Positions 2,526-64,000 of a stretch of 64,000 nt of DNA are shown here, piece by piece. Position numbers and translations under genes: made by a program. Position 1 is the first letter of the stretch, and each line of letters begins with the position of its first letter. This DNA comes from Octopus sinensis (taxonomy: Eukaryota): the NCBI RefSeq assembly GCF_006345805.1, contig NC_043021.1:19406001-19470000 (forward strand). Direction: 5' to 3'. The notes beneath the pieces are model-generated. The model was given only the letters and a program-made list of their open reading frames with translations. It did no database searches and was not told the origin of the DNA.

Positions 2526-4181
2526 ATAACAGCAGGTCATGTGTGTGTGTTACGTTTATCGCTATAAGTTTTTTAACGGTTGTGATTTGGGGAAGATTTG
2601 GTTGCTATTTCTAGCAATTTAGTGACTATCTAGAGCAGGCATCGGCAACCATTTTCGAGAAACGCCTTGATGCTTACAAACATTTTTAAAAACGTGGTCC
2701 TGTGAGCCGAGAAATTTTAGCAGCCGTTTCAAGGTGAAGGTCGATTATAAACATCACTGATAGGTACAAATATATCCAGTTTTATTTAGTCAAACCTTAA
2801 TATTTAATTATTAACATATCGAATAAAATATTTATTATAATCTACTAGTTATTTATATATAAAGATATTTAAAATTTGTCGATCATGAAATTAATTACCT
2901 ATATTGATTTATATCTTCTAATCAGTGTTTGTTTAGTCAGATATTTTGTATAATATTGAATGTCTAAATGTGTGTCAGTTAACTCTGGTTTCTCCTCACC
3001 CCGAGCGGATAAATCTTTCGCCTTTTACTAAAGATTTCCGTGGGGAGGAACATTTTAATGAGTCTATAGACTTATTTTTGAAAGCCTCATCTAACCATGA
3101 GGCGATAATTAAATTAACATCAGACTAATTAATTTGGATCACGAACCGGGATCCCCAGTCCCACTAACATTGTTATATTTCTCACGTAAACGGTATATTT
3201 ATCTATTCGTTGTTATAGTCCCCGTCACAACATTACAGCAATATTATATATTGCTTGCTGGCAAAGTGCTTAGCGGCATTTCGGTTGTCTTTGCGTTCCG
3301 CTGATGTCGACTTTGCCTTTCATCCTTTCGGGGTCGATAAATTAAGTACCAGTTACGCACTGGGGTCGATGTAATCGACTTAATCCCTTTGTCGGGAATC
3401 AATGAAATAAATACCAGTTGAATATTGCGATCGATATAATCGACTTGCCCCGAAATTACTGGCCTTGTGTCAAAATTTGAAGTGTGGTAAGTAGCTTGCT
3501 TACCAACCACATGGTTCCGGGTTCAGTCCCACTGCGTGGCGCCATGGGCAAGTGTCTTCTACTATAGCCTCGGGCCAACCAAAGTTTTGTCAGTGCCGCT
3601 GAGCGACACACACACACACACTCTAGCTACGCCACAGTGATCAACGCGACATTAAATGATTTTAAAATATACTTGCTCAAGATGACGAGAAGTGGAATCG
3701 AACACCGTGGCTAGGAAGCAAGCTTCTTTACCACTTACCACATGTCCGCTCCCTTAGAAGTTATTTTCTTTCTTTCAGAAGAACCAAACGAAATAAACCA
3801 CATTACATAACAGAAATTGATTCTCAAAAACAAAACAAAATTTTTTTTTCAAAAACTAACATTTGGTAAGTCTGTAACTCGGAATTCTCAAATTCTTTCT
3901 TTTCTAGATTTCGGTCGACGTCCCACACGGAATTTATAGGTCAAAATATGGATCAGGTATCGTTGATAAAAATCTGAAATGTTCGAGAAGTTTTTTCAAA
4001 TATCAGTCGAGTTTCTGCAACTCGTCAAAAGGCAAAGTTTCACGTTGAAAACTAAACGAACTTCTCCGACGATTTATTAGATTCTCAAAAGAAACCATCT
4101 GTCGAAAAAACTGCATCGATCAAAGCCATTTAACCATCTTCCTGCCAAATTTCAATTGAAATGCGTTGCCTTTATTTTTCT

Positions 4182-20345: not shown

Positions 20346-20512
20346 CATATATACGATGGGCTTCTTTCAGTTTCCGTCTACCAAATCCACTCACAAGGCA
20401 TTGGTCGGCCCGGGGCTATAGCAGAAGACACTTGCCCAAGATGCCACGCAGTGGGACTGAACCCGGAACCATGTGGTTGGTTAGCACGCTACTTACCACA
20501 CAGCCACTCCTG
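20106..20512 (-). mobile_element. tRNA-derived SINE family 1
   Basis: Full-length copy, just upstream of coding exon 1. Confidence 0.9.
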
Positions 20513-20679
20513 TGGATAAAAAAGGATTAACTTTGGCAGAATAATGTGAACACTAAAGGGTTAAGCATTTTGCCCGGTGGGCTAACGTTCCTGCCAGCTT
20601 GCCTTCGTTTCCACAGCTTCTTACCGAACAGCCCTGCCTGCACCTTGTTTTCTTTTTCTTTTCTTCAGAAATTTGAACG

Positions 20680-23036: not shown

Positions 23037-24891
23037 ACCTTGCATCTGTCTTTATTCAGATTACTTTCCTTTGTGTTACACAAAGGTAGGTAGATAGGAA
23101 CATACTATTGTCTTAATATGTACAGGGTAATTCAAAAGTCTCCATACATAGGAAAAATTTAGTTTTTTATAAGTAAGGCATAGGCGCAGGAATGGCTGTG
23201 TGGTAAGTAGCTTGCTAACCAACCAACCACATGGTTCTGGGTTCAGTCCCACTGCGTGGCATCTTGGGCAAGTGTCTTCTGCTATAGCCTCGAGCCGACC
23301 AATGCCTTGTGAGTGGATTTGGTAGACGGAAACTGAAAGAAGCCTGTCGTATATATGTATATATATATATATGTGTGTGTGTGTTTGTGTGTCTGTGTTT
23401 GTCCCCCTAGCATTGCTTGACAACCGATGTTGGTGTGTTTACGTCCCCGTCACTTAGCGCTTCGGCAAAAAGAGACCGATAGAATAAGTACTGGGCTTAC
23501 AAAGAATAAGTCCCGCGGTCGATTTGCTCGACTAAAGGCGGTGCTCCAGCATGGCCGCAGTCAAATGACTGAAACAAGTAAAAGAGTAGGTTTATAAGAT
23601 TCCCTAGATCCCCTGATCAGACTCCTCTTGATTGCTAACTTTGGGGCCATTTGAAAGGCATGGTGTATCACAGAAAGATGGACATAAATCATTTGAAGGA
23701 CCACATCACCAACTCATTTGCACACATATCACCAGATGTGTTATCGTGAGTTCACAGTGAATGGGGTAAACGTATTGCAATGTGTATTCACAACAATGGT
23801 AACCATATAATAGAGGCTCTTAAATAGAGAAAAAACCTGTTCTTTATAAACTGTTTCTTATAAAAAAATAAATTGGGATCTTTTCGGTTTGAATGGCAGT
23901 TTTTTCTAGCGGTGTCATATGAAATTGTCACCCATAATTATGACCCTAGTACCCATCTATTGCATTTCAATCTGTTTTAGGGATGGGGGGAAGGGTATCT
24001 TTTTTTTCTTCACAAATGTAAATAAACCCAATCTATTTCTTAAACGAGGGATATATTCATACGGCACAGAATGTTTTTTACCTAAATAGATGTCAGTGAT
24101 TGGTTGAAATTGCAGAAATTGAAGAAAAAAACAACAAATATCTTACAAACTATAGAATTTTCTTAATAAAGCCAAAAGAAAAAGATGTTTTATAAACACA
24201 TTCTACCAGTATACGAAGTTTAAAATTTTTTTAGTTACCTAGAAATTATGTTAAAAACTGCCGTTCAAACCGAAAAGATCCATAAATTGTTCCTATGTAT
24301 GGCAACTAACTCTAACCCTAACTTTTGAATCACCCTGTAAATTTATTTCTTAACAGCTGTCAGACAAAGTCTAAAACCCTTCATAGATACTCCAGATGTA
24401 AAACACGAAATAAATTTTGAAACTGTTCAACTGGAAGAGCCTGCTCTCTCCGTGGTAAGTTATGTATTGAAATCTTTTCATAACTAATTTGCACATATTG
24501 ATGAAGCAGTGGGGGGGTTCAATTCTTGGAACAAACCCTGAACCATGGTATTTTCTTCCAGAATGTATACAAATGTATAAGGCGGCTAGCTGGCAGAAAA
24601 ACGTTAGCACGCCGGGTGAAATGCTTAGTGGTATTTCGTCTGCCGTTACGTTCTGAGTTCAAATTCCGCCGAGGTCAAATTTGCCTTTCATCGTTTTGGG
24701 GTCGATTAAATAAGTACCAGTTACATACTGGGGTCGATATAATCGACTTAATCCATTTAGAAAGGTTTTTTTTTTTCCTCCAGTTTCTTGATTTTGGGTG
24801 GAAACTTCCTGGATTTATGTCTAAAATGTTCAGCCTCTGCAGATGGTTTAATCTGATCAAAGTAAAAGGCTTTCCATCAAATTTGCAAGAC

Positions 24892-24956
<65 letters not shown>

Positions 24957-26869
24957 TTGTCTGTGTTTGCGGTAAAAGCTTAAATATAGTAAACCACTCC
25001 AGTGTCTGTTAAGCGTTCAGCTGGGTGTCTGGAACTTCTTCTAGGTTTTATTTCAAAGCCCTTACCAGTAATGGTATCAACTGACATACGTAGCGCATAG
25101 TCAGCGACAATGAGGAAGAGAAATGGGGCGAGTGTATCTCCCTGCAGTATTCCGGCTTTGATTGAGAAAGATGATGTTTCCCCATCAGGGGTTAAGATGG
25201 TTGAAGACGTATCTGTGTAGAGGACCTTGATGGCAGAAATGATTTTGTCTGGAATCCCATAGAGCTTAAGGATTTCAAACATCTTGTACCTATCTACAGA
25301 GTCGAATGCTTTAGAAAAGTCTACAAACACCATTGCAAGATCGCGATTAAATGCTTTTGATTCTTCAATGAGTCTGCGTAGGCATAGTATTTGGCTCAAC
25401 GTTAAGTGTCCATGTCTGAATCCATTTTGGTTCTTTTGGAGTTCAACAAAAGGGACGAGACGGTTTAGAATCAGTTTGTTGTACAATTTTGCAGCAATTG
25501 ACATTAGAGATATACCCCTGTATTCTTCAAAGCCACAGTCGAACCAATTCTACTATATGGCTCAGAAACCTGGACGTTATCAAAGAAGCTTGAGAGACGG
25601 TTGGATGGAACTTACACTCGCCTACTTATGAGAGCTCAAAATCTCTCGTGGAAGCATCATCCAACCGAAGTACAAATATATGGGAAATTACCACCTGTAT
25701 CATCTCTTGTGAAAGGTAGAAGAGTCCAGTTTGCTGGACATTGTTGTAGAGCTGAAAACGAGGTAATTTCTCCTCTTCTCATCTGGAAGCCATCTGCTCG
25801 TGATACCAGAGGGTGCACCCTCTCCTACCCTGATGTAATCTCCAGGGATACAGGCATCTAGCAACAGAACCTCCGTAATGCCATGATGAACCGTGAAGTC
25901 TGGCGTAACATAGTAAATTCCATTGTCTCAACCACGGCCGAACAATGGTGATGATAAAACCATTCCAATTCCATTAGATATACATCATCACATTTTAGGG
26001 TAATAAGACTTGTTCTAGGAATGGTTAGACTTGCTGTCCCTTGTTTAATCCAAAATCTTTCCCTTACACTTTTGAAATTCATGATCCCTTTATTATCATC
26101 TTTTACAATTTCCTTTAAAATATGTGAGGTTTCAAGGCATTAGATATTCATTCCATTAAATTCCTTTCTCGTCAGATCAAATGGAACCCCAAAATTGTAG
26201 TGGCCTATTGTACCCCTATTTCTTCAACTGCTGAAAAACAATTATTGACAAACCCCATATTATAACCATCTCTCTAACAGTATAATGTGGGTTTTCATTG
26301 CTAGCAGGCATCATTCTGTTGTCATCAACAGTTGATGGCCACCTAGAATGGTCTTCTGCTTGGCATCTGAAATGTCCCAAACTGTATAGCACTTCTGCAA
26401 AAAGCTTTTATTCAACACAGCTTCTCCATATACAGCACATATTTCTCAGGTTGGGTGGGCAGTACCTTTTTTTTTTCTTTAATAATAGAGCATAATATGA
26501 TGAAAGTTCTTCTGATTTTTGGCTTTTCCAGATAAACGCAAATTGCTAAAAATTAATCATTTCAGACTAGAGATGACAAATCTTGCAATTATAACCTATT
26601 ATTTAATTAACTAAAACATTGGTATAAATGTTTGTTCTACATATGAAAAATTCAAACAAATTCACCAGGAATCCAATGCTAATATGTGTGTGTGTGTGTG
26701 AGGGCGCATGGCCTTGTGGTTAAGACCCCAGGACTTATTCTTTGTTAGCCTAGTACTTATTCTGTTGGTCTCTTTTGCCGAACTGCTAAGTTACAGGGAT
26801 GTAAACACACCAACATCAGTTGTCAAGCAATGGCAGGGGACAAACGTAGACACAAATTTATACACACAC

Positions 26870-26901
<32 letters not shown>

Positions 26902-29148
26902 GGGAAATTACCACCTGTATATATATATTATATATATATATATGGGAAATTACCACCTGTATATATATATATATATATATCATCATCATCATCATCATCA
27001 TTTAACGTCCATTTTCCATGCTAGCATGGGTTGGACAGTTCAACTGGGGTCTGGGAAGCCAAGAGGCTGCACCAGGCTCCAGTCTGATCTAGCAGTGTTT
27101 CTACAGCTGGATGCCTTTCCTAACATCAACCACTCTGTGAGTATAGTGGGTGCTTTTTACATGCCACCGGCACAGGGGCCAGAGGAGGTTGGCAATGGCC
27201 ACGATCAGTTGGTGGTTTTTACGTGCCACAGGCACAGAAGCCAACCAAGGCAGCACTGGCATTGGCCACGTTCGGATGGTGCTTTTTACGTGCCACTGGC
27301 ACAGGTATCACAACTACAATTCAATTTGATTTTTATTTTGATGTTGAGGTACTTGACTCAATAGGTCTCCTCAAGCACATCAGGTCATATTTATATGACA
27401 GGCTTCTTTCAGTTTCCATCTACTAAATCCACTCACAAGGCTTTAGTCGAAGACACTTGTCCAAGGTGCCACGCAGTGGGATTGAACCTGGACCCATGTT
27501 GTTGGGAAGCAAGCTTCTTACAACACAGCCACATAACAATCAAAACACGAAATAAAGCATCTTATTCACGGACTCACCAGGCTGCCGGGTATCGTCAACA
27601 TGTCCTTACAATTGTGAGCCGAATATCTCTAACCATTAAGCCATGCACCATCATGAGAATTTTCGACTTCTTTGAAATTAACAAATGTCTCTCCCGAAAG
27701 TGTCTCAAAACTTATGGTGCACCTCGTATGTAGGATATATGTATACACGCACATATACATACACACATGCTTGAACTTGTGTGCACATGTATCTCTGGAT
27801 GTGTTGTATTTCCTTAGTCATACTTATAATTAGGTAATCTCACCAACATTACCCCCCACCCCTAATCATTGAACCAATTAGTAATGTAACGAAGGTGCTT
27901 TTACTGTGTTAACTTTGTTAATTTTGGCAGTTCTCCAGGGATTCCATCATCAAGTCTACTGAAAGGTGAAGCATTCGAGGGGATTGTTGCCAAAGTATAA
28001 GATTAGCTCTCAGTATCAATTAGTCACTGAAATATGTTCTTGTGTGTGTGTGTGTGTGTTTTCACATGTTTGTGTATTTCTGTACATATATGTGGGTGTA
28101 TGTGCGTCTATGTGTGTGTATACATGTGTATGTATGCATGTGTGTGTTTCTGTATTTGTGCACCCTGGTGCAAGTGTACATACGTGTGGGTGTATATGCA
28201 TCTATGTGTATGTATGCATGTGTGTGTTTCTGTATTTGTGCACCCTGGTGCAAGTGTACATACGTGTGGGTGTATATGCATCTATGTGTATGTATGCATG
28301 TGTGTTTCTGTATTTGTGCACCCTGGTGCAAGTGTACATACGTGTGGGTGTATATGCATCTATGTGTATGTATGCATGTGTGTTTCTGTATTTGTGCACC
28401 CTGGTGCAAGTGTACATACGTGTGGGTGTATATGCATCTATGTGTATGTATGCATGTGTGTGTTTCTGTATTTGTGCACCCTGGTGCAAGTGTACATACG
28501 TGTGGGTGTATGTGCATCTGTATGTGTAAGTATGCATGTGTGTGTTTGTGTATTTGTGCACCCTGGTGCAAGTGTACATACGTGTGGGTGTATGTGCGTC
28601 TGTATGTGTGTATGCATTTGTGTGTGTGTTTGCACATGTGTGCATGTATGTGTTTGACTATTTGTGCACACTGGTGCATGCGTGCATACATGTGGGTGTG
28701 TCTATATGTGTGTGTTTACATGTGTGTGTGTATCTGTGTGCATGTGTATGTATGTGTGTGTTTGTACATATGTGTGCATGTATGTGTGTGTGTGTGTGTG
28801 TATATGTGCATGCTAGTGCATTTATGTGTACATGTGTTTGTGTGGGTGTTGGACCGGAGAAGTAATCTGGTAGTTTTTGCTGTTTTCCTTCCTCGAAAGT
28901 TTCTCCTGTTAAAAATAGAAAGTTTTTATTATTTTTGGTTTGTAAACAATTGTGACCTCAACACCACCATCACCATAACTACCACCACTACCACCACCAT
29001 TACCACCACCACCACCATCACCATAACCACCACCACCATCACCACCAACACCACCACCACCACCATCAATACCACCAACACCAACACCATCAATACCACC
29101 ACCAACACCACCCACACCACCACCACCCACACCACCACCACCCACACC

Positions 29149-29179
<31 letters not shown>

Positions 29180-29554
29180 CTACCACCACCACCACCAACA
29201 CCACTACCACCACCATAACCACCACCACCAGCTGGTGCTGTTGACGTAATAATTCTTACATAACGCATTGCAACAACATAAATACATGTCTCTGGAATTG
29301 GGTGTAAATAAATCTGGATTTGTGGGGGGGATACCCCAACACTTCTTCGCCACCATCTCCTCTCCGCTCTCTGTTTCTCTCTTTTTCTTTCCCACTCTAT
29401 CTCTCCCTCTCTTTGTCTCCCCTCTCTTTGTCTCCCCTCTCTTTGTCTCCCCTCTCTCTCTCCCTTCTCTCATCTCCATCTCTTTCTCTGTCTCTCCTCT
29501 CACCCTCCCTCTCTTTATCTCCTCTCCCCCCTCAATTCTCTCCCTCGCCTCCTG

Positions 29555-34889: not shown

Positions 34890-37800
34890 TCACTTTCCCA
34901 ACAGAGGTAACTATGTATCTCCTCTACTGCAAGTCCCCTGTTTCTGTCCCTTCTATTATACACTCACCTCTTATTCATCCCCTGGCACAAAGCCACCTCA
35001 CTCAATAATATTCTCTACCATCATTTGAGGGTGGTTTGTCTTGTGAGAGTTACTCGGTGACTTCACTGGTGCTACTGCCACATAAAGGCGGAGTTGGGTA
35101 GCTTAGTGGTTAGGGTGTTGGTCTCATGATCATAAGATTGTGGTTTTGATTCCTGGACCGAGCAACACATTGTGTTCTTGAGCAGAACTCTTTATTTCAC
35201 ATTACTCCAGTCCACTCAGCTGGCAAAAGTGAGTTATCCTGCGATGGGCTGGCATCCCATCCAGGTGAGGAGTATATACTCTTTTTACTCTTTTACTCTT
35301 TTACTTGTTTCAGTCATTTGACTGCGGCCATGCTGGAGCACTGCCTTTAATCGAGCAACTTGACCCCAGGACTTATTCTTTGTAAGCCCAGTACTTATTC
35401 TATCGGTCTCTTTTGCCGAACCATTAAGTGACGGGGACATAAACACACCAGCATCGGTTGTCAAGCAATGCTAGGGGGACAAACACAGACACACAAACAC
35501 ACACATACATATACATATATACGACGGGCTTCTTTCAGTTTCTGTGTACCAAATCCACTCACAAGGCTTTGGTCGGCCTGAGGCTATAATAGAAGACACT
35601 TACTCAAGGTGCCACGCAGTGGAACTGAACCCGGAACCATGTGGTTGTTTAGCAAGCTACTTACCACAGAGCCACTCCTGCGCCATGAAAACCAGGAAAG
35701 CAGCCCTTATGACAACATGACTTAAGAAGGTAACTAGAATAGGAGTGCCACATGTGGGTGGACTGAGCCATGAGTCAATCGGGCACTGCCTGACGGCAAG
35801 GGGGCTCTGAGGGGTCCACACTCTACATGTTAACTCTACTAAAACACACATTCAAAATGACCCGGTAAACAGTTATGCCCGAGGGCCCTTAATACTCTCA
35901 GTCTGCCCCTGATGCCACATAAAATACACCCAGTACATTTTGCAAAGTGGTTGGCATTAGGAATGGCATCCAATCACAGAAACCATGCCTAAGCTGACAC
36001 AGGAGTTCAGCACAGCGCTGTGGCTCGCCAGAAGCAAGGGGTGGCTATCAAATCTTCTAACCCATACCTATTTCTTTACTACCCACAAGGGGCTAAACAC
36101 AGAGAGGACAGACAAATGGATTAAGTCGATTATATCGAGCCCAGTGCGTAACTGGTACTTAATTTATCGACCCCCGAAAGGATGGAAGGCAAAGTCGACC
36201 TTGGCAGAATTTAAACTGAGAACGTAACGGCAGACGAAATACCGTGAAGCATTTCGCCCGGCGTGCTAACGTTTCTGCAAGCTCGCCGCCTTCATATCCC
36301 ATACCGGCATGGGATATGAACATTAAATTGTTAATGTTGTTGTTGTCGTTGGTGGTGGTGATGATGATGATGATGATTATTATTATGATGAGTTAATGAA
36401 GTAACTGGTTATTTTTTTTTTTTTTTTTATTTTCCAGTATGAAATGATCAAGAAAAGAGTAACGTTGCATGACGTTACGCCGGACATGTGGAAGGAGGTC
36501 GAGCAGGAATTGATTTGGCAGTTCATAGAAGACCCTTCAGTCCACGTGCTCATTATCTACAAGGACCCGCTCAACGGCATCATCATCGAACACTGCATTC
36601 GAACCGCATTCAATGCCAAACAGTTGTGTTACTTCATCAAGACGCCGCGCACCAAGGAGGTGACATCAGAAAACTTCCTCAATGTCATCCAATACGGCTG
36701 TGTGAAGGGACCGTCGTTTTTGGAAAGCCTGTTACGAGTGCTGTCTGGAGTTTTTGCACCTTTGTTCTTTGAAAACACCACTTGGCCTGATATTATCCTT
36801 TTAATCGCCTTTTAAAACCTTTTATCGTTTATATTTTAATTGTTTCAGTTGTTAGATTGTGGCCATGATGGAGCACTACCTTGATGGGGCTTAGGCGAAC
36901 AATTTGACTCTTTTTACTCTTTTTGCTTGTGTGTGTTTATTGAGCAGAAACACCTAAAGCTCCACGAAGGGGGTGGTGGCGACCCCTGTTGTACTCTTTC
37001 GCCCCAACTTTCTCTCATTCTTTCTTCCTGTTTCTTGAGTAACGCTGCGATGGACTGGCATCCTGTCCAGCTGGGGGGAACACATACACCACAGAAACCA
37101 GGAAACCAGGCCCATGAGCCTGGCTAGGCTTGAAAAGGGCACATAAATAATAAAAAACTACCAGCTTATCATCATCCCTTCCTTCCTTCCCTATTCATCT
37201 ATCACCCCTTCCTTTCTCATTTAAACGTTGTGACGGAGAAAAACACAAAAGTATTATAGTAGATTATAAATTTCTACTATAGGAACAAGGCAATAATTTG
37301 ATAGGAGGGAGCTAGTTGACTACATCAACCCCAATGTTCAACTAGCACTTCCTTTATCAACCCTGTTGGCCTCAACAGCACTTGAACTCTGAACATAAGC
37401 CGCCAGAGGAAATCCACTCACAAGGCTTTGGTCAGGCCGAGGCTATAGTAGAAGACACTTGCCCAAGGTGCCACGCAGTGGGACTGAATCCGGAACCATG
37501 TGGTTGGTAAGCAAGCTACTTACCACACAGCCACTCCTATGCCTATATATATATATATATATATATTATGATCATGAAATTAGCATTAGCTTATCTCACT
37601 CTTTCTCAGGGAAACCTAGGAGCCTTTTGCAGAACCCTAGGGATCCGGGGAACCCCAGTTGAGAAACACTGCCTTAAAGTGATAAATTAATATTTCCGGA
37701 GCTGGCAGAATTGTTAAGATGATGCTAGACCTTGCAGCATTTCTTCCTACTTCATGTTGTGAGCATGTCCCTTAGTGGCTGACGATATGTGCATCTCTGA

Positions 37801-40800
37801 CCACGAGCAGAAGTAGTGGGGGAGCATCATAGCCATGTGTTGAGAGGGATTCTTTGGGGTTTGAATAATTCACCTCTGGAAACATGGGTGTTTTGTCCAA
37901 CATCCTTAAACAGTCCTTATTCAGGGACCTTTTGAGCAGGATGGGTTACTCGACCAGAAGAAAATTCTAACTAGGCCCTACTTGCACGGTCATGTGCTCT
38001 TTATCTTGTTATGAGATCACCATGTCGCGCACATATGGTTGTGATGCATGTGCCTGGTGTACCCTTATCAGACGGGTAGTCATGATGGGTATACTGGGTT
38101 TCGTATATTTTACCCCAGTGTCACTTTGATGGTATGCACTGCTCTTTCACTCAATAATAATAATAATAATAATATCAAAAATACCTTAGGAATGAGAACC
38201 CAGGTTCGAAATTTCCCCAAGACACCTGATGAAGGCTGCAGGGTATATCAGCCAAAATGTTGTGTTAGCAACAAACAAGATGAGGACAAATATCCATCAA
38301 ATGTAAATATTGTTGTATAAAACTGTTGTAAACAGTTTTACAGTTTCCACTAAAAAGAAATCTTTTTCTACTCTAGTTCCTTTACATTTTATCATAATGG
38401 TAGAAGGATATGGCAAAATGGTTTCATGCTTTATTATTTTATTTTTTGTTGTCCATTCAAAGCAAACAAGAACAACATGTCGTCCTTAACATTTTCCTAC
38501 AGGCATCAAAAATGATTTCTTTGCCCAACTCCACAAATTTCTGGCCACTTTGACAGACACTCACTGGAAGCTGGAAGACAAAACGGTTTTGTATATTCCC
38601 AAAGAAAATCTGAATATTCCCATTGAAATCGCTGCCAGGCATAAAGAATTTGTACAAAGACTGGAAAGTAATTATCGATTGTCATTAACTTCTTTGCGTG
38701 GAAGGTGTTTGTAAGCCATTTAAGAAACACACAAAAGCCATTCGATTCACTTCAACATTTAAGTTTAATTTGTCAAATTTGGACTGGTGGTACATAAAAA
38801 GCACTATCCGAACCGTGGCCGATGCCAGCGCCGCCTCGACTGGCTTCCATGCCGGTGGCACGTAGGAAGCACCAATCCGACCATGGCTGTTGCCAGCCTC
38901 GCCTGGCACCTTTGCAGGTGGCACATAAAAAGCACCCACTACACTCACAAAGTGGTTGGCGTTAGGAAGGGCATCCAGCTGTAGAAACATTGCCAGATAA
39001 GACTGGAGCCTGGTGCAGCCTTCTGGCTTCCCAGATCCCCGGTCGAACTGTCCAACCCATGCTAGCATGGGGAATGGACGTTAAATGATGATGATGATGA
39101 TTTTTGTTGCTATAAGACCGCGACCTGTTCACTGAGAAAAATGCAGCACGGATTTATGTCAGTGAACAGGTCGCAGTCTTATAGCGACGAAAATATTTTG
39201 ACAAATTAAACTTAAATGTTGAAGTGGATCGAACGGCTTTTGTGTGTTTCTTAAATGGCTTACAAACACCTTCCACGCTGCAATTGTTTTCGTTCGAGCA
39301 CACGATCTCAGATCAAATCACTTGCTATGCAAGTACATCTCCGTAACATTAACTTCTTGTTGCTCTTTTATCGTTGTTGGTTACGGTCTAGAGCAGTGGT
39401 TTTTCAACCATTTGTTTTTCACAACCGTCAGAGCGTGAAGTGCAGTTTGTGAGATGGTTGTGATCTGGAAACCGTTTTGAGTAGGAACTGGAAACAGAGG
39501 AATGAACGCATGATGCACATGTGCACACTAAATTCGTAAAAAGAGAAGAATAAAAATGTAACATGCATGTTAATGTAAAACAGAAGAGAAGAAGGAAAAC
39601 ACAATGTCAAACAAGTTATATGGTGGTCTGCAGGCCACACCTGATACCCCTATCATGCTGCTTTGCTGCCATTTTCTTGTTTTATCTCTGAACCCCTTTG
39701 ATTACTATTTTATTCTGGTAGCCCCACCTCATAGCCATTCGTTGTTTAAAAACTAGTTTTATAGAATTTTCTTTCAAAATTCCTCTTTTGTTATTCACTC
39801 ATCAATTTCTGTTGGTTGAGCAATGAGAAAGAAGCCAAGCTGTTTTACTTGTTTCAGTCATTTGACTGCGGCCATGCTGGAGCACTGCCTTTAGTCGAGC
39901 AAATCGATCCCGAGACTTATTCTTTTGTAAGCCCAGTACTTATTCTATCAGTCTCTTTTGCCGAACCGCTAAGTGACGGGGACGTAAACACACCAGCATC
40001 GGTTGTCAAGCAATGCTAGGGGGACAAACACAGACACACAAACACACACACATACATATATATATATACATATATATACGACAGGCTTCTTTCAGTTTCC
40101 GTCTACCAAATCCACTCACAAAGCATTGGTCGGCCCGGGGCTATAGCAGAAGACACTTGCCCAAGATGCCACGCAGTGGGACTGAACCCAGAACCATGTG
40201 GTTGTTTAGCAAGCTACTTACCACACAGCCACTCCTGCGCCTATTTTTTTTTTTGCAGAAAATACATCCAAAGTAACATTTTTCCCGTGGCTCTTTATAA
40301 TACTTCCATGGATCTGCAATTTAACCATTTTGCTTGCGTGGACCCCCAAAAAATCTTACATAGACCCCAGTTGAGAACCACTAGTTTAGAGCAATGATGG
40401 GCAACTTTTTCCAAGAAGTGGGCCCCTTGAGACATGGCTCATCACCAGGTGGGCCACACTACTAAAAACAAAATCCAAGATAGATTGGGATATAAAACTG
40501 CTTTCTGCAGTTAAGGATAATGAAATTTTGATTGGTTATATCTGATTTCTGCATTTAAAAGGATTAACCAATGATAGCATAGCAATAATGATGAGGGTGA
40601 TTACACTAACGAAGTTGATTATGACATTGATGACATTCCTTATTCTTTTTTCTATTTCAATTAGCTAATTTTAACCCTTTCACTGTAAAATTGAATTTCA
40701 TGGTTGTTCCTGTAATAATGTTAAATTCCTACCAGAAAACAGAATTGATATTTTCTGCAGATCACACTGCCTCAATAAACTTGACATAATTCAATAGAAA

Positions 40801-42185
40801 ATGGTTTCAAGCATGACATTTCTCAACAAGAGACAGATTGGGATATCAAACTGCTTTCTGCAATTAAGGGTAATGAAATCTGGAGTGGTTATATCTGATT
40901 TAAAAGGGTTAACCAATGATGAGGATGATTACACTAACGAAGCTGATTATGACATTCTTTTTTCTATTTTAATTAGCTAATTTTAACCCTTTCACTGTGA
41001 AATTAAATTTCATAGTTCTTCCTGTAGAGATGTTGAATATCTACCAAAAAAAACAGAATTGGTATTTTCTGCAAGTCTTGTTATTTCAATAAACTTGATA
41101 TATAAGGCGCAGGAGTGGCTGTGTGGTAAGTAGCTTGCTAACCAACCACATGGTTCCGGGTTCAGTCCCACTGCGTGGCATCTTGGGCAAGTGTCTTCTG
41201 CTATAGCCCTGGGCCAACCAATGCCTTGTCAGTGGATTTGGTAGACAGAAACTGAAAGAAGCCTGTCATATATATGTATATATATATATATGTATGTGTG
41301 TGTGTTTGTGTGTCTGTGTTTGTCCCCCTAGCATTGCTTGACAACCGATGCTGGTGTGTTTACGTCCCCGTTACTTAGCGGTTCGGCAAACGAGACCGAT
41401 AGAATAAGTACTGGGCTTACAAAGAATAAGTCCCGGGGTCGAGTTGCTCGACTAAAGACGGTGCTCCAGCATGGCCGCAGTCAAATGACTGAAACAAGTA
41501 AAAGAGTATATCTCACCAAAAGTTTCAAACATGAGATTCCTCAACAAAAAATAGATTGGTGTATAAAACTGCTTTCTGCAGTTAAGGGTAATAAAATTTT
41601 GATTAGATATATCTGATTTCTGCAGTAAAAAGGTTAAGGTCTTTGCTCACAGCTGGAGTGTTTTCTCAGCTTCATTTTTCTCTTTTATTATTATTATTAT
41701 TATTATTATTATGACATTTTGTTTGATCTTTTCCCTTAGCCTCGATGATCCATTGGGCAAGACAGATCAAAGAAGTTCTGAGCACACAACATTCTATCGA
41801 GTCGTCTGAAACGAGCGGCCCACTTGATGAAATAGAATTCTGGAAGAACCGTTGTGCCGATTTATCAGGAATAAGCAGTCAGCTGGATAACAAGATAGTC
41901 AGAAGAATCACCCAGATTTTGGAGCTTGCCAAGTCTTCTTATGTCACCCCATTCGTCAAACTTTCCAGTCAAATTAAGGTAACTTATGAGAAAAAATGCA
42001 AAAGAAGAACCCGTTTTAGTCTACAAATTTATTTATTCTTTTACATGTTTCAAATTCCACCAAGGTAGACTTTGCCTTTCATCCTTTCAGAGTCAATAAA
42101 TTAAGTACCAGTGTTTGATATAATCAACTGGTCCCCTCTCCCGAAATTTCAAGCCTTGTGCCAAAAAGATTATTATTATTATTGA

Positions 42186-42234
<49 letters not shown>

Positions 42235-45200
42235 GAGTGAGAGAGCAGCGCATGCCATCAAAGTGACACTGGGGTAAAATATACGAACCCCAGTATACCC
42301 ATCATGACTACCCGTCTGATAAGCGTACACTAGGCACATGCATCACAACCATATATGCGTGACATGGTGATCTCATATCAAAATAAACAGCACATGACCT
42401 TGCAGGTGGAGCCCAGTTAGAACCCATCCCGCTCAAAAGGTCCCTGAATAAAGGTTGTTTAAGGATGTTAACTGAAACATCCATGTTTCCAAAGGTGAAT
42501 TATTCAAACCCCAAAGAATCCCTCTCAACACATGGCTATGATGCTCCCCCAATACTTCTGCTCATGACCAGAGATGCACATATCGTCAGCCACTAAGGGA
42601 CATGCTCAACTAGTTACGGTCAAACAACTGACAAGCAAATCTGTGGTATTGAGCAGAATATTTGCTGTAGCCCATCTTTTATACCAAGACAAAACAATCA
42701 GTTAAGATCAGAAGCCATGAGAGCCACTGCCTGGTACTGCATCAGGGCATTCATCATCATCATCGTTATTATTATTAAGGTGGTGAGCTGGCTGAATTAT
42801 TAGCACATTGGACGAAATGCAATGCAGCATTTTATCCGATACCACATTCTGTGTTCAAATCCCACCAAGGTTGACTTTGCTTTTCATCCCTTCACAGTTG
42901 ATAAAACGAGTACCAGTTGAATACTGGGGTCACTGTAATCATCTTACCCTTCCACTCAAATTGCTGGTACTGTACCAAAAATTTTAAATTATTATTATTG
43001 AAATTGAAATCAAATTCGATGACTGGCACCTGTGCTAGTGGAGCACCAAGAGCACCATCCGAGCGTGATCGTTGCCAGAGCAACTAACTGGTTTCCGTAC
43101 CGGTGGCACATAAAAAGCACCATTCAAGCGTGATTGTTACCTGCGTCGCCTTACTGGCACTTGTACTGGAGTCACGTGAAAAAATCATTCAAGCGAGGTC
43201 GTTACCAGTGCTGCTGGACTGGCTCCTGTGCAGGTGGTACTTAAAAGACACCACTTGAGCGTGGCCGTTGCCAGTACTGCCTGACTGATTCTCGTGCTGG
43301 TGGTACGTAAAAGCACCCACTACACTCTCGGAGTGGTTGGCGTTAGAAAGGACATCCAGCTGTAGAAACATTTCCAGATCAAGATTGGAGTCTGGTGCAG
43401 CCATCTGGTTCGCCAGTCCTCAGTCAAATTGTCCAACCCATGCTAGCATGGAAAGCAGACGTTAAACGAGGATGATGATGATTATTATATTATTATTATT
43501 ATTATTTATTTATTTAAGGTGACGAGTTGGCAGAATCGTTAGCATGCCAAGCGAAATGCTTAGAGGTAGTTAACCCATCTCTACATTCTGAGTTCAAATT
43601 CCGCTGAGGTCGACTTTGCCTTTCATCCTTTCGGGGGTTGATTAAATAAGTACCAGTTACACACTGGGGTTGATGTAATGTACTCAATCCCCTCCCCCCA
43701 AGCTGCCCTTGTGTCAAAAACTTGAAATAATAATAATTATTTTTTGTCCCTTTTTTTTCATGTTTTTAGTTTCTTTTTTTTTCTTCTTTTTTTTTAATAT
43801 TCCTTTCTTTCTTTCTTTCTTGTTCTGCAACAGGAAGGTTCCTACCAAGCTGAAAGCAACCTGAGGTTTTTGATGATTCTGAAAGAGCCTTGTTTAAAGC
43901 TGACAGAAGCTTTGCCAAAAGATATCCCACCCATTATCACTGAGCTGTTGACTTTAATCCGGATTATCTGGATGAACTCTGAATTCTACAACACTAAAGA
44001 GAAATTAACTGGTCTCTTGAAAAAGGTTCTTTTTTTTGCTTTTAGCACCATGATTTGAATAACTGGTTTCATCCAATTCTTGATTTATCTGTATGAAGGG
44101 TTCTTATAATCATTGCTGTCCCTGTTGTTGTTGTTGCTCCTGTCCTTGTTGCTGTTGTTTGTTTGTTTGTTGAGCGAAGCGGTCTTCGTCCTAGAAGTCC
44201 GAAATGTGGTCCTTTGCTACTCGTAAGACACGCAGAAGAGAAAGCAGGTCAACCCCCTGACACCGAGAGCATCGACGGATGGATGAATGCGCATACCCCC
44301 TTGTATAGTCATGTGGTTGGGATGCAAACTTCTTACTATACAACCTCTATATTTCTATCATTAATATTAATCAATTAATCAGTACCGATATTTATACAAT
44401 TTTTATCATTAGTATCAATTCATTTATAAAAAGAAAACTTTAAAAAACAACAAAAAAAACCTCATAGAATAACATTACAAAATGGAGTTTCTGTTTCTGT
44501 TTTTACATTTCAGAAAAATAACATTTTCATTTATTTGCTTATTTATTTGTTTATTTGCAGCTTAGCAATGAGATTATCCATCAGTGCTGTAAAGCCATTA
44601 ATCTTGACCGGATATTTGAGGGCTACATAAAGAGTAGTTCGCAAACCCTCATCGACTGCATTGAATGTTGCGAAAAATGGAGAGAGAAATATGATATGGT
44701 GAGTGTCAGCTTTGATCTTTCGCTTGTTCCAGTCATTGGACTGCAGCCATGCTGTGACAACGCTTCGGACAATTTTTAGTCGAATGTATCAACCCCAATA
44801 CTTAACTTAATTTAATTTTTTTCTTTGCTAAGCCTGGTGCTTATTCTATCAATCTCTTTTGCCGAACCACTACGTTACAAGGACAAAGACATACCAACAT
44901 CAGTTGTCAAGCAGCAGTGGGGGGGAAACAAACACACACACACACATATAATGGGCTTCTTCCAGTTTCCCTCTACCAAACCCACTCACACACACACAAC
45001 GGGCTTCTTCCAGTTTCCCTCTACCAAACCCACTCACAAGGCTTGGGTTGGCCTAAATCTATAAAGACATTTGCCCAAGGTGCCAAGTAGTAGAATTGAA
45101 CCCAGAGCCATGTGGTTACTTATTCTATCAGTCTCTTTTGCCTAACCACTACGTTACAAGGACAAAGACACGCCAACATCAGTTGTCAAACAGCAGTGGG

Positions 45201-50242: not shown

Positions 50243-53200
50243 CACAACAGACTTGTTTTAGTTTCCATCTGGTAAATTCATTCACAAGGCTTTTGTTGGC
50301 CTAGGGCTATAGAAGAAGACATTTGCCCAAGGTACCACACAGTGGTACTGAACCTGGAACCATGTAGTTGGGAAGAAAACTTGTCTGTCACACAGCCCTT
50401 AAAGGCTGCAGAATGGGGAAATAGGTAGTCCCACACAAAATAATTAGCAGGGGTAGCTGTGTGGTAAGTAGCTTGCTTACCAACCACATGGTTCCGGGTT
50501 CAGTCCCACTGCGTGGCACCTTGGGCAAGTGTCTTTTACTATAGCCTTGGGCCGACCAAAGCCTTGTGAGTGGATTTGGTAGATGGAAACTGAAAGAAGC
50601 CCATCGTATATATGTATGTGTGTGTATATGTTTGTCTGTCTGTGTTCGCCCCCCCCCCCAACATTGCTCGACAACCGATGCTCATTTGTTTACGTCCCTA
50701 TAACTTAGCGGTTCGGCAAAAGAGACAGAGAGAACAAGTACTAGGCTTACAAAGTAAAGTCCTGGGGTTGATTTGCTCGATTAAAAGGCAGTGCTCCAGC
50801 ATGGCCGCAGTCAAACGACTGAAACAAGTAAAAGAGTAAAAAAGAGTCTTTACTCCCAGCCCTTTCCATTCTCATTTCAAATCCTACCAGGAATGGCTTT
50901 TATGTCCTTATCAGTTCAAAGTATCAAAAGATCAATTAAAGCAACTTATTCCCTTCCCTCCAATAAATTTTCGCTCCTTTCTGCCAAGATGCTATTCAAA
51001 GAATTTTGTTTTCTTTTCTTTTTTACAAATCAGGTTCCGTTGTGGCATAAAAGACTTGGAGGTGATGCTACAAGGTTTGATTTCAAATGCCTTTGAAACC
51101 ATCACTTCAGTGTCGGAAGGAGTGGAATTGCTGGATATCTTCACGCACCTCTGCAACCGTGAGGTAACTTGCCAGGAGCATTACACTGAATTTAACCCAA
51201 TCATTCTCATCCTTTTTTTTTTTTTTTTTTTTCATCTATGGGTCCCTTTAATTCCTATTTTACTCTGCTGGACCCCTGCTGCTATTTGGTATTTAAAAAA
51301 TTCCTATTATATCATCATCAACATCATTTAGCATCCATTTTCCATGCTGGCATGGGTTGGACTGTTTGACCAAGACTGCTGAGCTAAAAAGTTGTACCAG
51401 GCTCCAGTCTGATTTTAGCTTGATTTCTATGGCTAGATGCCTTTCCTAATGACAACCACTCCAAGAGTGTAGTGAGTGCTTTTTATGTGCTACCAGCACG
51501 AGTGCCTTTTACGTGTCATCGGCACAAGCGCCTTTTTCATGTCACTGGTGTGGGTGCCTTTTACATGTCATATTTGTACAACCGAGGTCATTGCCAGTGC
51601 TGCTGGACTGGCTCCTGTGCAGGTGGCACATAAAAAAACACCACTTGAGCATGGCTGTTGTCAGTACCACCTGACTGGCCCTCGTGCTGGTGGCACGTAA
51701 AAGCACCCACTACACTCTTGGAGTGGTTGGCATTAGAAAGGGCATCCAGCTGTAGAAACTCTGCCAGATCAGATTGGAGCTTGGTGCAGCCATCTGGTTC
51801 GCCAGTCCTCAGTCAGATTGTCCAACCCATGCCTGCATGGAAAGCAGACATTAAACAATGATGATGATGATGATTAGAAATTGTATTTGTTAAAATGTTT
51901 TGTATATTGTAGAAATATTTAGGAACAAAACCACATGTGAACCTGAAAGGGTCATTTGGACCTCGTTCAAAACCACTGTTTTAAACCTTTATCTGTCCTG
52001 TATATCCCATGGTCATCATTGGCGTTAACTCATATCCAAGTAGTTAATCCCTAGTGAGTGATGAAGCCTCTTCATCCTGATGGGTGCAAAGGGTACCAGT
52101 GCCTGAGATGGAGGTTCAGGCCAAGAATGGTACCACGTGATACATAAGACCTATTTCCATGGTGTCTATGCATTAAATATGATACACATTCTCAACTTTT
52201 CCTATCTAACCACCAGAGTAACTCGGGACTTATGAAGGGAAGGCTTTATATTACTCAGAATGTATAAAACAAGGACCAACCAAAAGTCCGAAAACAACTG
52301 TGGGTGTTTCAGACAAATTTATGAAAATTCCTTGGACAGAAAAAGGGATTAAAGGGATTAGTGGCAGCTTCTATTCTGGTAGAAGTCTGTCTTCAGTGTC
52401 ACATGTGATACTCAGAACATTTTTCTCTGACTTCCATGCATCGTATACGATAAACATTCCCAATTTTTTTCTCAGCCATTAGAATAATTTGGAACTTATG
52501 AAAGGAAAGTTTATGGCTTTTGTATATTGTAGAAATACAAGCAATTTAATGTACATAAACTTTAGGAACAAAACCATATGTGAACCCGAAAGGGTCATCT
52601 GGACCTTGTTCAAAACCACTGTTTCGACCCTTTATCTGTCCTGTATATCCCATGATCATACCAGAGTATATCTGTATATTACAGATAATACCAGAATATC
52701 TGTATATCACAGATAATACCAGAATAGAAATCAAGCCAAAAGTTTACTCAGAACATTTGAAACAAGGACTATAGTAAAAGTCCGGAAAGGATAGACATAT
52801 GAAAATGCTTTGGACAAGCAAAAGGTTGAAATGAATACAGTCGTCATTGTTATTGAGGTTTAGTCTTCTATTATAATTCCAATCACACGATGCCGATGTC
52901 ATGTCAATGGTACCTGTGCCAGTGACAGATAAAAAGCACCCACTACACTCTTGGAGTTGTTGGCATTAGGAAGAGCATCCAGACATAGAAACCATGCCAA
53001 ATCTGATCAGAAGCTGGTGCAACTCCCCAGCTTACCAGTTTTCAGTCAAACCGTCCAACCCATGCCTGCATGGAAAGTGGATGCTAAATGATGATGACCT
53101 AGGATAGGCGGCGAGCTGGCAGAAACGTTAGCATGCCGGCCGAAATGCGTAGCTGTATTTCGTCTGCCGTTACGTTCTGAGTTCAAATTCCGCCGAGGTC

Positions 53201-57800: not shown

Positions 57801-60107
57801 ACGTCCTGTCGCTTCCTCGTCTATGCTCCAACTGCCCGCTTCCGCGATCGCCACACGTGTGTCCCGCTTGACCGCTCCCCCCCCCCGCACATGTGCCCTC
57901 TAGTCTTCCACCGGGGCCCTTGCAAGCCCTACTTCCTCCCTCCTTTATCTGTCGTCCTCTTCCGCTTCCCCGTGCACATGCGCCCTCCAGTCTTCCACCG
58001 GGCCCCTGCAAGCCCTACTTCCGCCCTCCTTTATCTGTCCTCCTCTCCACCGACACCACAGTAATGCTATGAATTATGTTAACACTGACCTAAATAAGAT
58101 AAAGTTTAATTAAAAGATATATGTAGTGAGTAAAGAAGATAATGACCGACAAGATTATCTTTTTTTTTTTTTTTTTTAAGGATCCACTCACATACTTGGA
58201 TCTCCCTTTGATGCAAAAAACTATAGAAGAGGACGTTCCAGTTTTGCACCTGAATTTTTACAAGTAGGTGACCATTTTCTTCTCAGAGTTCAATCATGTG
58301 CTTCTGAATTCATTTACACTCTATGGTACCTTCTTAGAGGAGGCGCAATGGCCCAGTGGTTAGGGCAGCGAACTCGCGGTCATCGGATCGCGGTTTCGAT
58401 TCCCAGACTGGGCGTTGTGAGTGTTTATTGAGCGAAAACACCTAAAAGCTCCACGAGGCTCCGGCAGGGGATGGTGGTGATCCCTGCTGTACTCTTTCAC
58501 CACAACTTTCTCTCACTCTTACTTCCTATTTCTTTTGTACCTGTATTTCAAAGGGCCGGCCTTGTCACTCTCTGTGTCACGCTGAATATCCCCAAGAACT
58601 ACGTTAAGGGTACACGTGTCTGTGGAGTGCTCAGCCACTTACATGTTAATTTCACGAGCAGGCTGTTCCGTTGATTTGGATCAACCGGAACCGTCGTCGT
58701 CGTAACCGACGGAGTGCTTCCAAAAAAAAATAAAAAGACCTTCTTAGACAAGTGTTTTCCACTAGCTTCTCAAGTCACCACAAATCTCGTCAGTGAAATG
58801 TGAAAGTATATCAGATGGACTGTAGCAACAGTAATTCTTTGCCTAGTTGTGTTAAAAAAAAACAAAAAAACACCAATATATTTCAGAGTTAAAACAAAAT
58901 CACCCAGGTAGTGACTGCAAGAACAACAGGTGCGCATTTCACTGTATTTGCAGCTTGTCAGTATTATTTAATCGTGTCACTTTTGAAACGAGGTTAAATC
59001 AGCCAGTCTGAAGTATATAAAGAAAATGTATAAACGATACACTGGTTTTTCTTCTCATGCATATAGTTTACACATCTGTTTATACACAGAAATGCATTTC
59101 ACTGTATTTGAAGCTTAGGGCTGTTTCTATTCAGATTTTATTTAGCCTTATTATAATATAAGGTGTCAGAACAAATTCTGCAAAGCGTTTTTGCCAATGC
59201 TCTAACGAATCTGCCAGTTTGCTGCCTTCTTGTGTGTAAATAATACCCCCCACGGTCACCTACGAAACATTATGACTTCAAAACGGGGCTTTAGCCAAAA
59301 AAACCATGACTTCATTGTGTCAACCACTCTGCAGGGTGGTTGGTGTTAGGAAAGGCATCCAGCCATAAAAAAAAAAAAAACCATGCCAAAACAGACACAG
59401 TAACCTGATGTAGTCTTCTACCTGGTCAGCTGATATCAAACTGTCCAACCCATGCCAGCATTGAAGGCAGATGTTAAATGAGGATGATCATTATATACTT
59501 CACACACACATATATATCTTATACATCTCAGTTCTTGAATGATTGTGTTTGCAGTTGTCTTTTGTCCATGCGTTTTAGAGGGATTGTTTTTATTTTTATA
59601 TTTTTACATTTGTTTCAAATCCAGCTGTTTCCACTCCATATTTCAGATTTTATTTATCCTTATAGGCGCAGGAGTGGATGTGTGGTAAGTAGCTTGCTAA
59701 CACACCACATGGTTCCGGGTTCAGTCCCACTGCGTGGCATCTTGGGCAAGTGCCTTCTGCTATAGCCCCGGGCCGACCAATGCCTTGTGAGTGGATTTGG
59801 TAGACGGAAACTGAAAGAAGCCTGTCGTATATATGTATATATATATATATGTGTGTGTGTGTTTGTGTGTCTGTGTTTGTCCCCCTAGCATTGCTTGACA
59901 ACCGATGCTGGTGTGTTTACGTCCCCGTCACTTAGCGGTTCAGCAAAAGAGACCGATAGAATAAGTACTGGGCTTACAAAGAATAAGTCCCGGGGTCGAT
60001 TTGCTCGACTAAAAGGCGGTGCCCCAGCATGGCCGCAGTCAAATGACTGAAATAAGTAAAAGAGTAAAGAGTTATATACTTCACACACAAACACACACAT
60101 ACATACA

Positions 60108-63489: not shown

Positions 63490-63558
63490 TTTTATCTATC
63501 TATCTGTTTGTCTATTTGTTTGTAAGTCTGGTTATCTATCTATCTGTCTATCTTCCTT

Positions 63559-63589
<31 letters not shown>

Positions 63590-64000
63590 ACATAGCTATC
63601 TGTTAATCTATCTATCTATCTGTCTATATCTGTCTCCTTGTCTATCTGCCTGCTTGTCTATCTGCCTACTTGTCTGTCTGCCTACTTGTCTGTCTGCCTA
63701 CTTGTCTATCTGTCTGCTTGTCTATCTATCTGTCTATTTATCTATCCATCTATCTATCTGTTTGTCTATCTATCTATCCATCTATCTGTTTATTTATTTG
63801 TTTGTCTGACTACCTATCTATCTATCTATCTGTCTGTCTATCTATCTATCTATCTAACTATCTATCTATCTATCTGTCTGTCTGTCTGTCTGTTTGTTTG
63901 TTTGTCTATCTATCTATCTAACTATCTGTCTGTCTCTCTGTCTGTCTACCTATCTATCTGTCTATCTATCTAGCCATCTATCTATCTATCTATCTATCTA
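63490..64000. repeat. (TATC)n/(TGTC)n compound microsatellite
   Basis: Visible directly. Confidence 0.97.

Follow-up and report, generated by a model that had tools for sequence, protein, structure and literature searches.

A TT-AG intron of the minor (U12-type) spliceosome is probably spliced from the DNAH2 dynein heavy chain gene of octopuses. The intron lies in a stretch of 64,000 nucleotides (nt) of the Octopus sinensis genome (NCBI RefSeq assembly GCF_006345805.1, contig NC_043021.1, positions 19,406,001 to 19,470,000 of the forward strand), hereafter termed the window, in whose coordinates all positions are given. It extends from 36793 to 38502 on the forward strand, measures 1710 nt, interrupts the gene in phase 1 and was delimited from the sequence itself and by enumeration of splice pairs. 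Its position +1 (36793..36793, forward strand) is occupied by T, while orthologous introns display G, as established from the sequence, from orthologous loci and from the read-through product WPD-IIL of Octopus bimaculoides. From these sequences we infer that this exact junction is used and that the minor spliceosome is the agent.

The DNAH2 intron and its orthologues

The gene was identified with a 246-residue spliced N-terminal fragment used as a query against the PDB. The best matches are the DNAH2 chains 9fqr_D0 (E = 5e-73) and 8j07_k9 (1.8e-71), followed by the Chlamydomonas inner-arm I1 beta heavy chain (8e-58), and DNAH10, DNAH5, DNAH9 and DNAH17 were matched at 1e-16 or weaker. The best sequence match being DNAH2/I1-beta rather than other dynein heavy chains, the gene is assigned by sequence as the DNAH2 orthologue; the same assignment had been proposed in an original prediction made by a model from the letters of the window. 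DNAH2, which is the beta heavy chain of inner-arm dynein I1/f, is required for cilia and flagella to beat normally; its N-terminal ~530 residues are encoded in the examined part of the window. The exon located upstream of the intron (36438-36792, forward strand; translation, tblastn and PDB search) is preceded by a T-rich acceptor terminated by CAG, encodes YEMIKKRV...FFENTTWPD plus the first base of a Ser codon, and reads TTT GAA AAC ACC ACT TGG CCT GAT A at its 3' end. A 12-kb intron separates it from the previous exon, which ends at 24454. The downstream exon (38503-38667, forward strand; translation and tblastn) starts with GC ATC AAA AAT GAT TTC, encodes (S)IKNDFFAQLHKF...EFVQRLE and is followed by an ordinary GTAATT donor. 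It is 78% identical to the corresponding exon of two orthologous loci described below, L004 and L009. The DNAH2 exons downstream are open and conserved across at least about 17 kb, and align without frame disruption to a vertebrate-like orthologue (P0049) until about residue 530.

The bases found directly after 36792 are TTATCCTTTTAATCGCCTTTTAA; the intron starts with TTATCCTTTTAA and ends with GTCGTCCTTAACATTTTCCTACAG. The 5' splice site TTATCCTTTT (36793-36802, forward strand), set in the same register as in the GTATCCTTT orthologues, matches the U12 box TATCCTTT from +2 to +9 and contains the U11/U6atac pairing region TATCCTT, which marks U12 membership, from +2 to +8. At the 3' end, CAACATGTCG is followed by the branch-site box TCCTTAAC (38483-38490, forward strand), by ATTTTCCTAC (attttcctac) and by the 3' splice site AG (38501-38502, forward strand), both sites being located from the sequence and from their orthologous counterparts. 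The second A of the box stands 13 nt before the last intron base. The segment upstream of the box, CAAAGCAAACAAGAACAACATGTCG, is purine-rich and by eye displays no long pyrimidine tract, and downstream of it there is just attttcctac. Joining 36792 to 38503 yields FFENTTWPDSIKNDFFAQLHKF, i.e. ...FFENTTWPDSIKNDFFAQLHKFLATLTD..., and WPDSIKNDF runs uninterrupted across this junction in many animal homologues. Reading into the intron produces GAT ATT ATC CTT TTA ATC GCC TTT TAA, with the stop TAA at 36813-36815 reached after 7 codons. All donor and acceptor pairs within 9 nt were enumerated and 36793/38502 is the only one that restores WPDSIKNDF at the orthologous length. The WPDSIK junction, the donor that is U12-like except at +1, the perfect branch box, the TAA codon and the lack of another donor preserving the conserved residues (here within 9 nt) were thus all found as the original prediction had claimed.

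A purine at +1 characterizes the G-type (GT-AN) and A-type (AT-AN) subtypes, and T is found at this position here and in O. bimaculoides. These two subtypes are therefore excluded, but not membership of the U12 class, because the class is defined by the 5' box and the branch site and not by the terminal dinucleotides (review, PMC3584512). The combination of TT and AG termini with a U12 5' box and a branch box is that of the rare TT-AG U12 subtype. Both boxes are frequent enough to be encountered by chance when taken individually: on both strands of the window, TATCCTTT occurs 4 times (3.3 expected from shuffles) and TCCTTAAC 2 times (2.6 expected). From these frequencies, we estimate at about 1e-8 the chance of finding both in correct register at one homology-fixed junction. 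Another occurrence of TATCCTTT, at 55963 (forward strand), was considered as a second U12 donor and rejected, as it sits within the pyrimidine tract of an ordinary acceptor. All nine other DNAH2 introns inspected in the window start with GT (GTAAGT, GTAATT, GTAACT, GTTCTT, GTGAGT, GTAAGA, GTACGG, GTAACT and GTAAGC), and the acceptors inspected in these introns all end with AG (7/7), mostly behind a clear pyrimidine tract.

The translation of exon 36438-36791 was used as a query against 1.84 billion representative proteins. This search returned 179 significant matches, the best 150 of which were listed and are counted here; most of them are short open reading frames (ORFs) called on anonymous eukaryote genomic contigs. 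After WPD/E, the exon continues in 77 matches (SIKNDF, SIRNHF and similar). It is followed by SIL in 35, SIF in 4, SIH in 3 and GIL in 1, then by unrelated sequence and an early stop, which amounts to 43 read-through fragments at 50% clustering; a second protein search at 90% clustering, with P0016 as query, added 7 further SIL fragments. SK and unrelated sequence follow WPD/E in 7 matches, and IIL in exactly one, the O. bimaculoides entry. The SIL fragments point to phase-1 read-through of a canonical U12 GT donor, since A/GT ATC CTT (the slash denoting the splice site) encodes Ser-Ile-Leu, and the SK fragments to a U2-type donor, since A/GT AAR encodes Ser-Lys.

The DNA of several orthologous loci was then fetched and the junctions were read. 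The window displays the donor GATA/TTATCCTTTT and the branch box TCCTTAAC 10 nt before the 3' end AG/GCATC, for an intron of 1710 nt. The corresponding elements are GACA/GTATCCTTTT and TTCCTCAAC, 10 nt before AG/GCATC, in L004 (3734 nt); GACA/GTATCCTTTC and CCCTTAAC, 9 nt before the AG end, in L005 (1624 nt); GACA/GTATCCTTTG and GCCTTAAC, 9 nt before the AG end, in L009 (511 nt); and GACA/GTATCCTTTA and TCTTTAAC, 9 nt before the AG end, in L011/L012, which are two NCBI assemblies (962 nt). From L006 and L007/8 the donor side was recovered (GACA/GTATCCTTT). Six other animal genomes thus have the A/GTATCCTTT donor at the same codon and in the same phase. In the four loci whose 3' end was recovered, a branch box of the CCTYAAC or TTTAAC type is found 9-10 nt before AG (4/4). 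A long pyrimidine tract was seen in none of these four, except that in L004 a run of T immediately precedes the box. Of all the orthologous branch boxes, that of the octopus comes nearest to the consensus.

Other genomes show different fates of the same position. L010 (3204-3263) contains a 60-nt U2-type intron, A/GTAAGT...CGCAG, at the same site. L001/L002 (L001 at about 3237) and L003 (at about 2387) have no intron here but share the next one, located after QRLE. In mammal-like genomic exons, the sequence is uninterrupted through WPESIRNHF and an intron is found instead 17 codons downstream (ACLT/G). Proteins P0087, P0091, P0097, P0099 and P0107 were listed alongside the loci illustrating these fates. 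Taken together, the sequences indicate an old and widely conserved U12-type GT-AG intron that was lost in mammals and in some invertebrates and is U2-type in at least one lineage. The comparison with orthologous introns suggested in the original prediction, which had held that the U12 identity would stand whatever the origin of the T, was consequently fruitful: both orthology and motifs bear out that identity, with U12 donors in six genomes and branch boxes in four of them. Its vertebrate part was uninformative, as the mammal-like exons run straight through the site.

The nucleotide similarity between L004 and the window extends 10 nt into the 5' end of the intron and, at the 3' end, from the branch box through AG. 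An upstream exon of poor conservation is also common to both (VETVQLEDPGPSV against FETVQLEEPALSV), and because of this shared N-terminal exon L004 is probably another cephalopod. Its +1 base is G.

The only IIL match, A0A0L8GEJ5 (P0001; O. bimaculoides, UniProt), is a 150-residue model, 93% identical, that ends with ...FFENTTWPDIILLIAF. Its read-through, WPD-IILLIAF, consists of the same eight residues and stop as that of the window. The first Ile codon spans exon position -1 and intron positions +1 and +2 and, as all Ile codons have U in second position, +1 must be T in O. bimaculoides. In this exon, 8 of 125 residues are different between the two sequences, and identity drops to just 67% in the preceding exon, so the sequences originate from different species. 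A T common to two octopus species removes the readings of a consensus error and of a private allele, and the presence of G in all outgroups implies that the octopus lineage underwent a G>T transversion. On this evidence, we regard the T at +1 as real, natural and fixed in that lineage. The original prediction had left the choice between a natural TT-AG intron, a hypomorphic or null allele and a consensus error; the first is now favored, as the T is shared by O. bimaculoides. The start Met of A0A0L8GEJ5 aligns with a Phe codon (TTC) of the window at 24380-24385, just past an acceptor-like ...TTAACAG. This model is probably artefactual at both ends, and the gene probably has real exons further upstream.

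Splicing of the TT donor and alternative explanations

Removal of the intron by the minor spliceosome as a TT-AG intron, at 36793/38502, is the explanation we consider likely. An ancient U12-type intron exchanged G for T at its first base in the octopus lineage, where T was fixed. It is established that U11, then U6atac, base-pair with the box, downstream of +3, and thereby determine the cleavage site; here, both would pair with the intact TATCCTTTT box and set the cleavage register. The branch box TCCTTAAC, which matches the consensus perfectly and lies 13 nt from the 3' end, would be the pairing partner of U12. Cleavage before T36793 and ligation to G38503 would then remove the intron and unite GAT A with GC ATC, to encode WPDSIK with AGC as Ser codon. 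U11-48K contacts +1 to +3 (as cited in PMC7367187), and a weakened contact at +1 may be offset by the strength of the branch site.

A number of points weigh against TT-AG splicing at this junction. No octopus transcript or junction read was found in any searchable collection: the junction-peptide search retrieved A0A0L8GEJ5 as the sole octopus entry, and no contigs were retrieved by exact look-ups of this protein and of the window read-through ORF. For O. bimaculoides the evidence consists of amino acids, from which +1 = T, +3 = A, +4 = T and +7 = T follow, but not every base. Gly replaces Ser in some DNAH2 orthologues (WPDGIRNDF in P0024, P0067 and P0073), so that protein conservation alone leaves room for an AT-CA junction shifted by one base. 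A uridine at +1 reportedly impairs U12 splicing in mammalian mutagenesis, as stated in the original prediction, and the catalogues are consistent with this. All 770 human minor introns in MIDB (770/770) have A or G at +1 (AT-NN or GT-NN in Table 1 of PMC13602164), and non-canonical U12 introns were defined as RT-RN or GC-AG in an earlier catalogue (Sheth et al., PMC1557818); given this purine at +1, a pyrimidine is expected to be a poor substrate.

In an alternative explanation, the minor spliceosome removes the intron at a shifted junction. The in-frame pairs starting with AT are AT(36792)-CA(38501), leading to WPDGIK, and AT(36790)-AG(38502), leading to WPGIK; the TT donor could also be joined to a neighbouring 3' site, with a one-residue insertion or deletion as a result. 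The G>T change creates ATATTATCC, so that A residues stand just upstream of the box, the shifted pairs stay in frame and Gly is found at the Ser position in some orthologues. An altered +1 base reportedly can move the 3' site, as in the Peutz-Jeghers case of LKB1. AT-AG is furthermore a common non-canonical U12 type in Table S1 of PMC10639083. The TATCCTTT box and the AG are nevertheless in exactly the orthologous register and with any such shift the spacing between box and cleavage site, which is fixed, would change by 1-3 nt. AT-CA is absent from that table, which covers ~73,700 conserved animal minor introns, and Ser is present in the great majority of orthologues, which makes a shifted junction unlikely. 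A block of splicing by the +1 change, turning octopus DNAH2 into a pseudogene or limiting it to truncated or alternative-start products, would agree with the near absence of +1 pyrimidines from catalogued minor introns, with the read-through stop after 7 codons and with the O. bimaculoides gene model ending there. It is difficult to reconcile with exons that are open and conserved on both sides of the intron (78% identity to L004 and L009, P0049 match to ~530), with splice motifs conserved between two octopus species and relative to L004, and with the need for DNAH2 in ciliary and flagellar beating; we hold it to be quite improbable.

The remaining two explanations are given very little credit. 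If T36793 were an error of the consensus or an allele (null or hypomorphic) private to the sequenced animal, the species would normally have G and an ordinary GT-AG U12 intron; in favor of this, all other orthologues have G at +1, and a single wrong base would suffice. The independently sequenced and annotated O. bimaculoides, however, encodes Ile (AUH) over -1, +1 and +2 followed by ILLIAF and the stop, and it is very unlikely that two species would share one error or one rare allele. The intron might otherwise be removed by the major (U2-type) spliceosome as a non-canonical TT-AG intron resembling that of human ETV1, since human TT-AG junctions validated by reverse transcription PCR are classed as U2-like (PMC4176328). 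In the octopus, however, A/TTATCCTT is almost without match to the U1/U6 donor consensus (AG/GTRAGT), no pyrimidine tract precedes the branch box, and that box is a perfect U12 one at U12 spacing. The orthologues are also U12-type and, where the intron is U2-type (L010), the donor is GTAAGT. Removal of this intron by the major spliceosome thus appears highly improbable. Rescue of the donor by A-to-I editing was considered and rejected, as the +1 base is U and not A.

Intron interior and other features of the window

Comparison of the intron with the rest of the window using blastn reveals three repeated segments on the forward strand: an interspersed repeat at 36927-37158; a short repeat copy at 37407-37575, SINE-like by its size and copy number, followed by an (AT)n tract and with ~25 matches elsewhere in the window; and an interspersed repeat at 37760-38183 that is 87.5% identical to 42204-42608 on the minus strand. 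At the two ends of the intron, the initial 134 nt and the final ~320 nt are unique in the window. Delivery of the splice ends by a transposable element was rejected on this basis, the repeats being interior only (36927-38183), and the arrangement suggests an old intron inflated by insertions. The short repeat (~130-140 nt) is encountered in ~25 places on both strands, often beside (AT)n or (TATA)n, with copies 80-95% identical that include 37407-37575, 20383-20514, 41098-41239, 50449-50577 and 59661-59798. Its translated copies display the recurring ORF motifs MSSNARGTNTDTQTH... and ...GTEPGTMWLVSKLLTTQPLL.

A full-length match to the U5 spliceosomal small nuclear RNA is found at 2980-3104 on the forward strand (Rfam RF00020, model positions 1-117, score 91.4 bits, gathering score 40). 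It precedes the first identified DNAH2 exon by ~21 kb. Inside the 12-kb intron, an ORF on the minus strand (24980-25504) shows by eye reverse-transcriptase-like motifs (...FVDFSKAFDSVDR...ILQGDTLAPFLF...) and is probably a LINE fragment. Two intronic tracts are of low complexity or microsatellite-like: 28000-29250 is (TG/CA)-rich and gives rise to long spurious ORFs in which C, V, Y, H and T abound, and 63500-64000 is (CTxTCTxT)-like.

Significance and relation to known minor introns

Efficient splicing of a +1-uridine U12 intron in an essential axonemal motor gene of the octopus is a tentative proposal, which we consider possible but doubtful from the sequences at hand. If it were true, the minor spliceosome would not strictly require the +1 purine that mammalian introns suggest. 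Compensation by the strong branch site would be one explanation, the other being a relaxed +1 recognition by the cephalopod minor spliceosome, for which the U11-48K contact and the pairing of the first with the last nucleotide in the second step are candidates. In the latter case, more TT-AG minor introns would be expected in cephalopod genomes, where they would break gene models. The intron represents a natural and evolutionarily fixed test of the use of a +1 pyrimidine by the minor spliceosome, the ancestral state (G) being clean from the orthologues, in a gene whose correct splicing is presumably required for cilia and sperm flagella. That the intron limits the rate of DNAH2 expression, as suggested in the original prediction, is speculation. 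Automated annotation breaks at the site, A0A0L8GEJ5 ending in read-through exactly there, and octopus DNAH2 models are probably truncated or split at the TT-AG intron. As the U12 intron is absent from mammals, it is missing from human-centred catalogues of minor-intron genes. One intron position has thus met three fates, namely retention, precise loss and a U2-type form. The interest of these results to splicing specialists should be moderate; they are useful for annotation.

Literature searches found nothing on DNAH2 together with minor introns, nor on cephalopods together with the minor spliceosome. TT-AG minor introns have already been tallied and are very rare: in Table S1 of PMC10639083 (Larue and Roy 2023), they account for 10 of ~73,700 conserved animal minor introns (0.014%) and 12 of ~23,300 conserved plant minor introns (0.051%). 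The octopus DNAH2 intron adds one to this type, and the comparative result is new. The cross-species comparison of PMC10639083 includes Octopus sinensis, and molluscs are described there as relatively rich in minor introns; the DNAH2 intron may therefore be one of the ten animal cases. Those TT-AG introns have the same termini, are likewise classed as minor and conserved across species, and are known from that table as counts.

The closest relatives of the octopus intron are the orthologous G-type DNAH2 introns (L004, L005, L009 and L011/12). They share its gene, codon and phase, the TATCCTTT box from +2 to +9 and, at 9-13 nt from the 3' AG, a branch box of the same type. They likewise lack a long pyrimidine tract. 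The octopus intron differs from them by T instead of G at +1, by its perfect TCCTTAAC and by lineage-specific repeats in its interior. Switching of U12 subtypes between related species has been documented (PMC1557818). The AT-AG, AT-AA, AT-AT, GT-AT, GT-GG and GC-AG subtypes are likewise one base away from a canonical pair and, as in the octopus intron, are recognised through the 5' box and the branch site and not through their termini; they retain a purine at +1, whereas the octopus intron has a pyrimidine. Human TT-AG introns such as that of ETV1 (PMC4176328) are also natural and validated, have the same TT...AG termini and similarly break standard aligners and gene models. They display a U2-like donor context and are classed as U2_GTAG, whereas the octopus intron carries U12 motifs.

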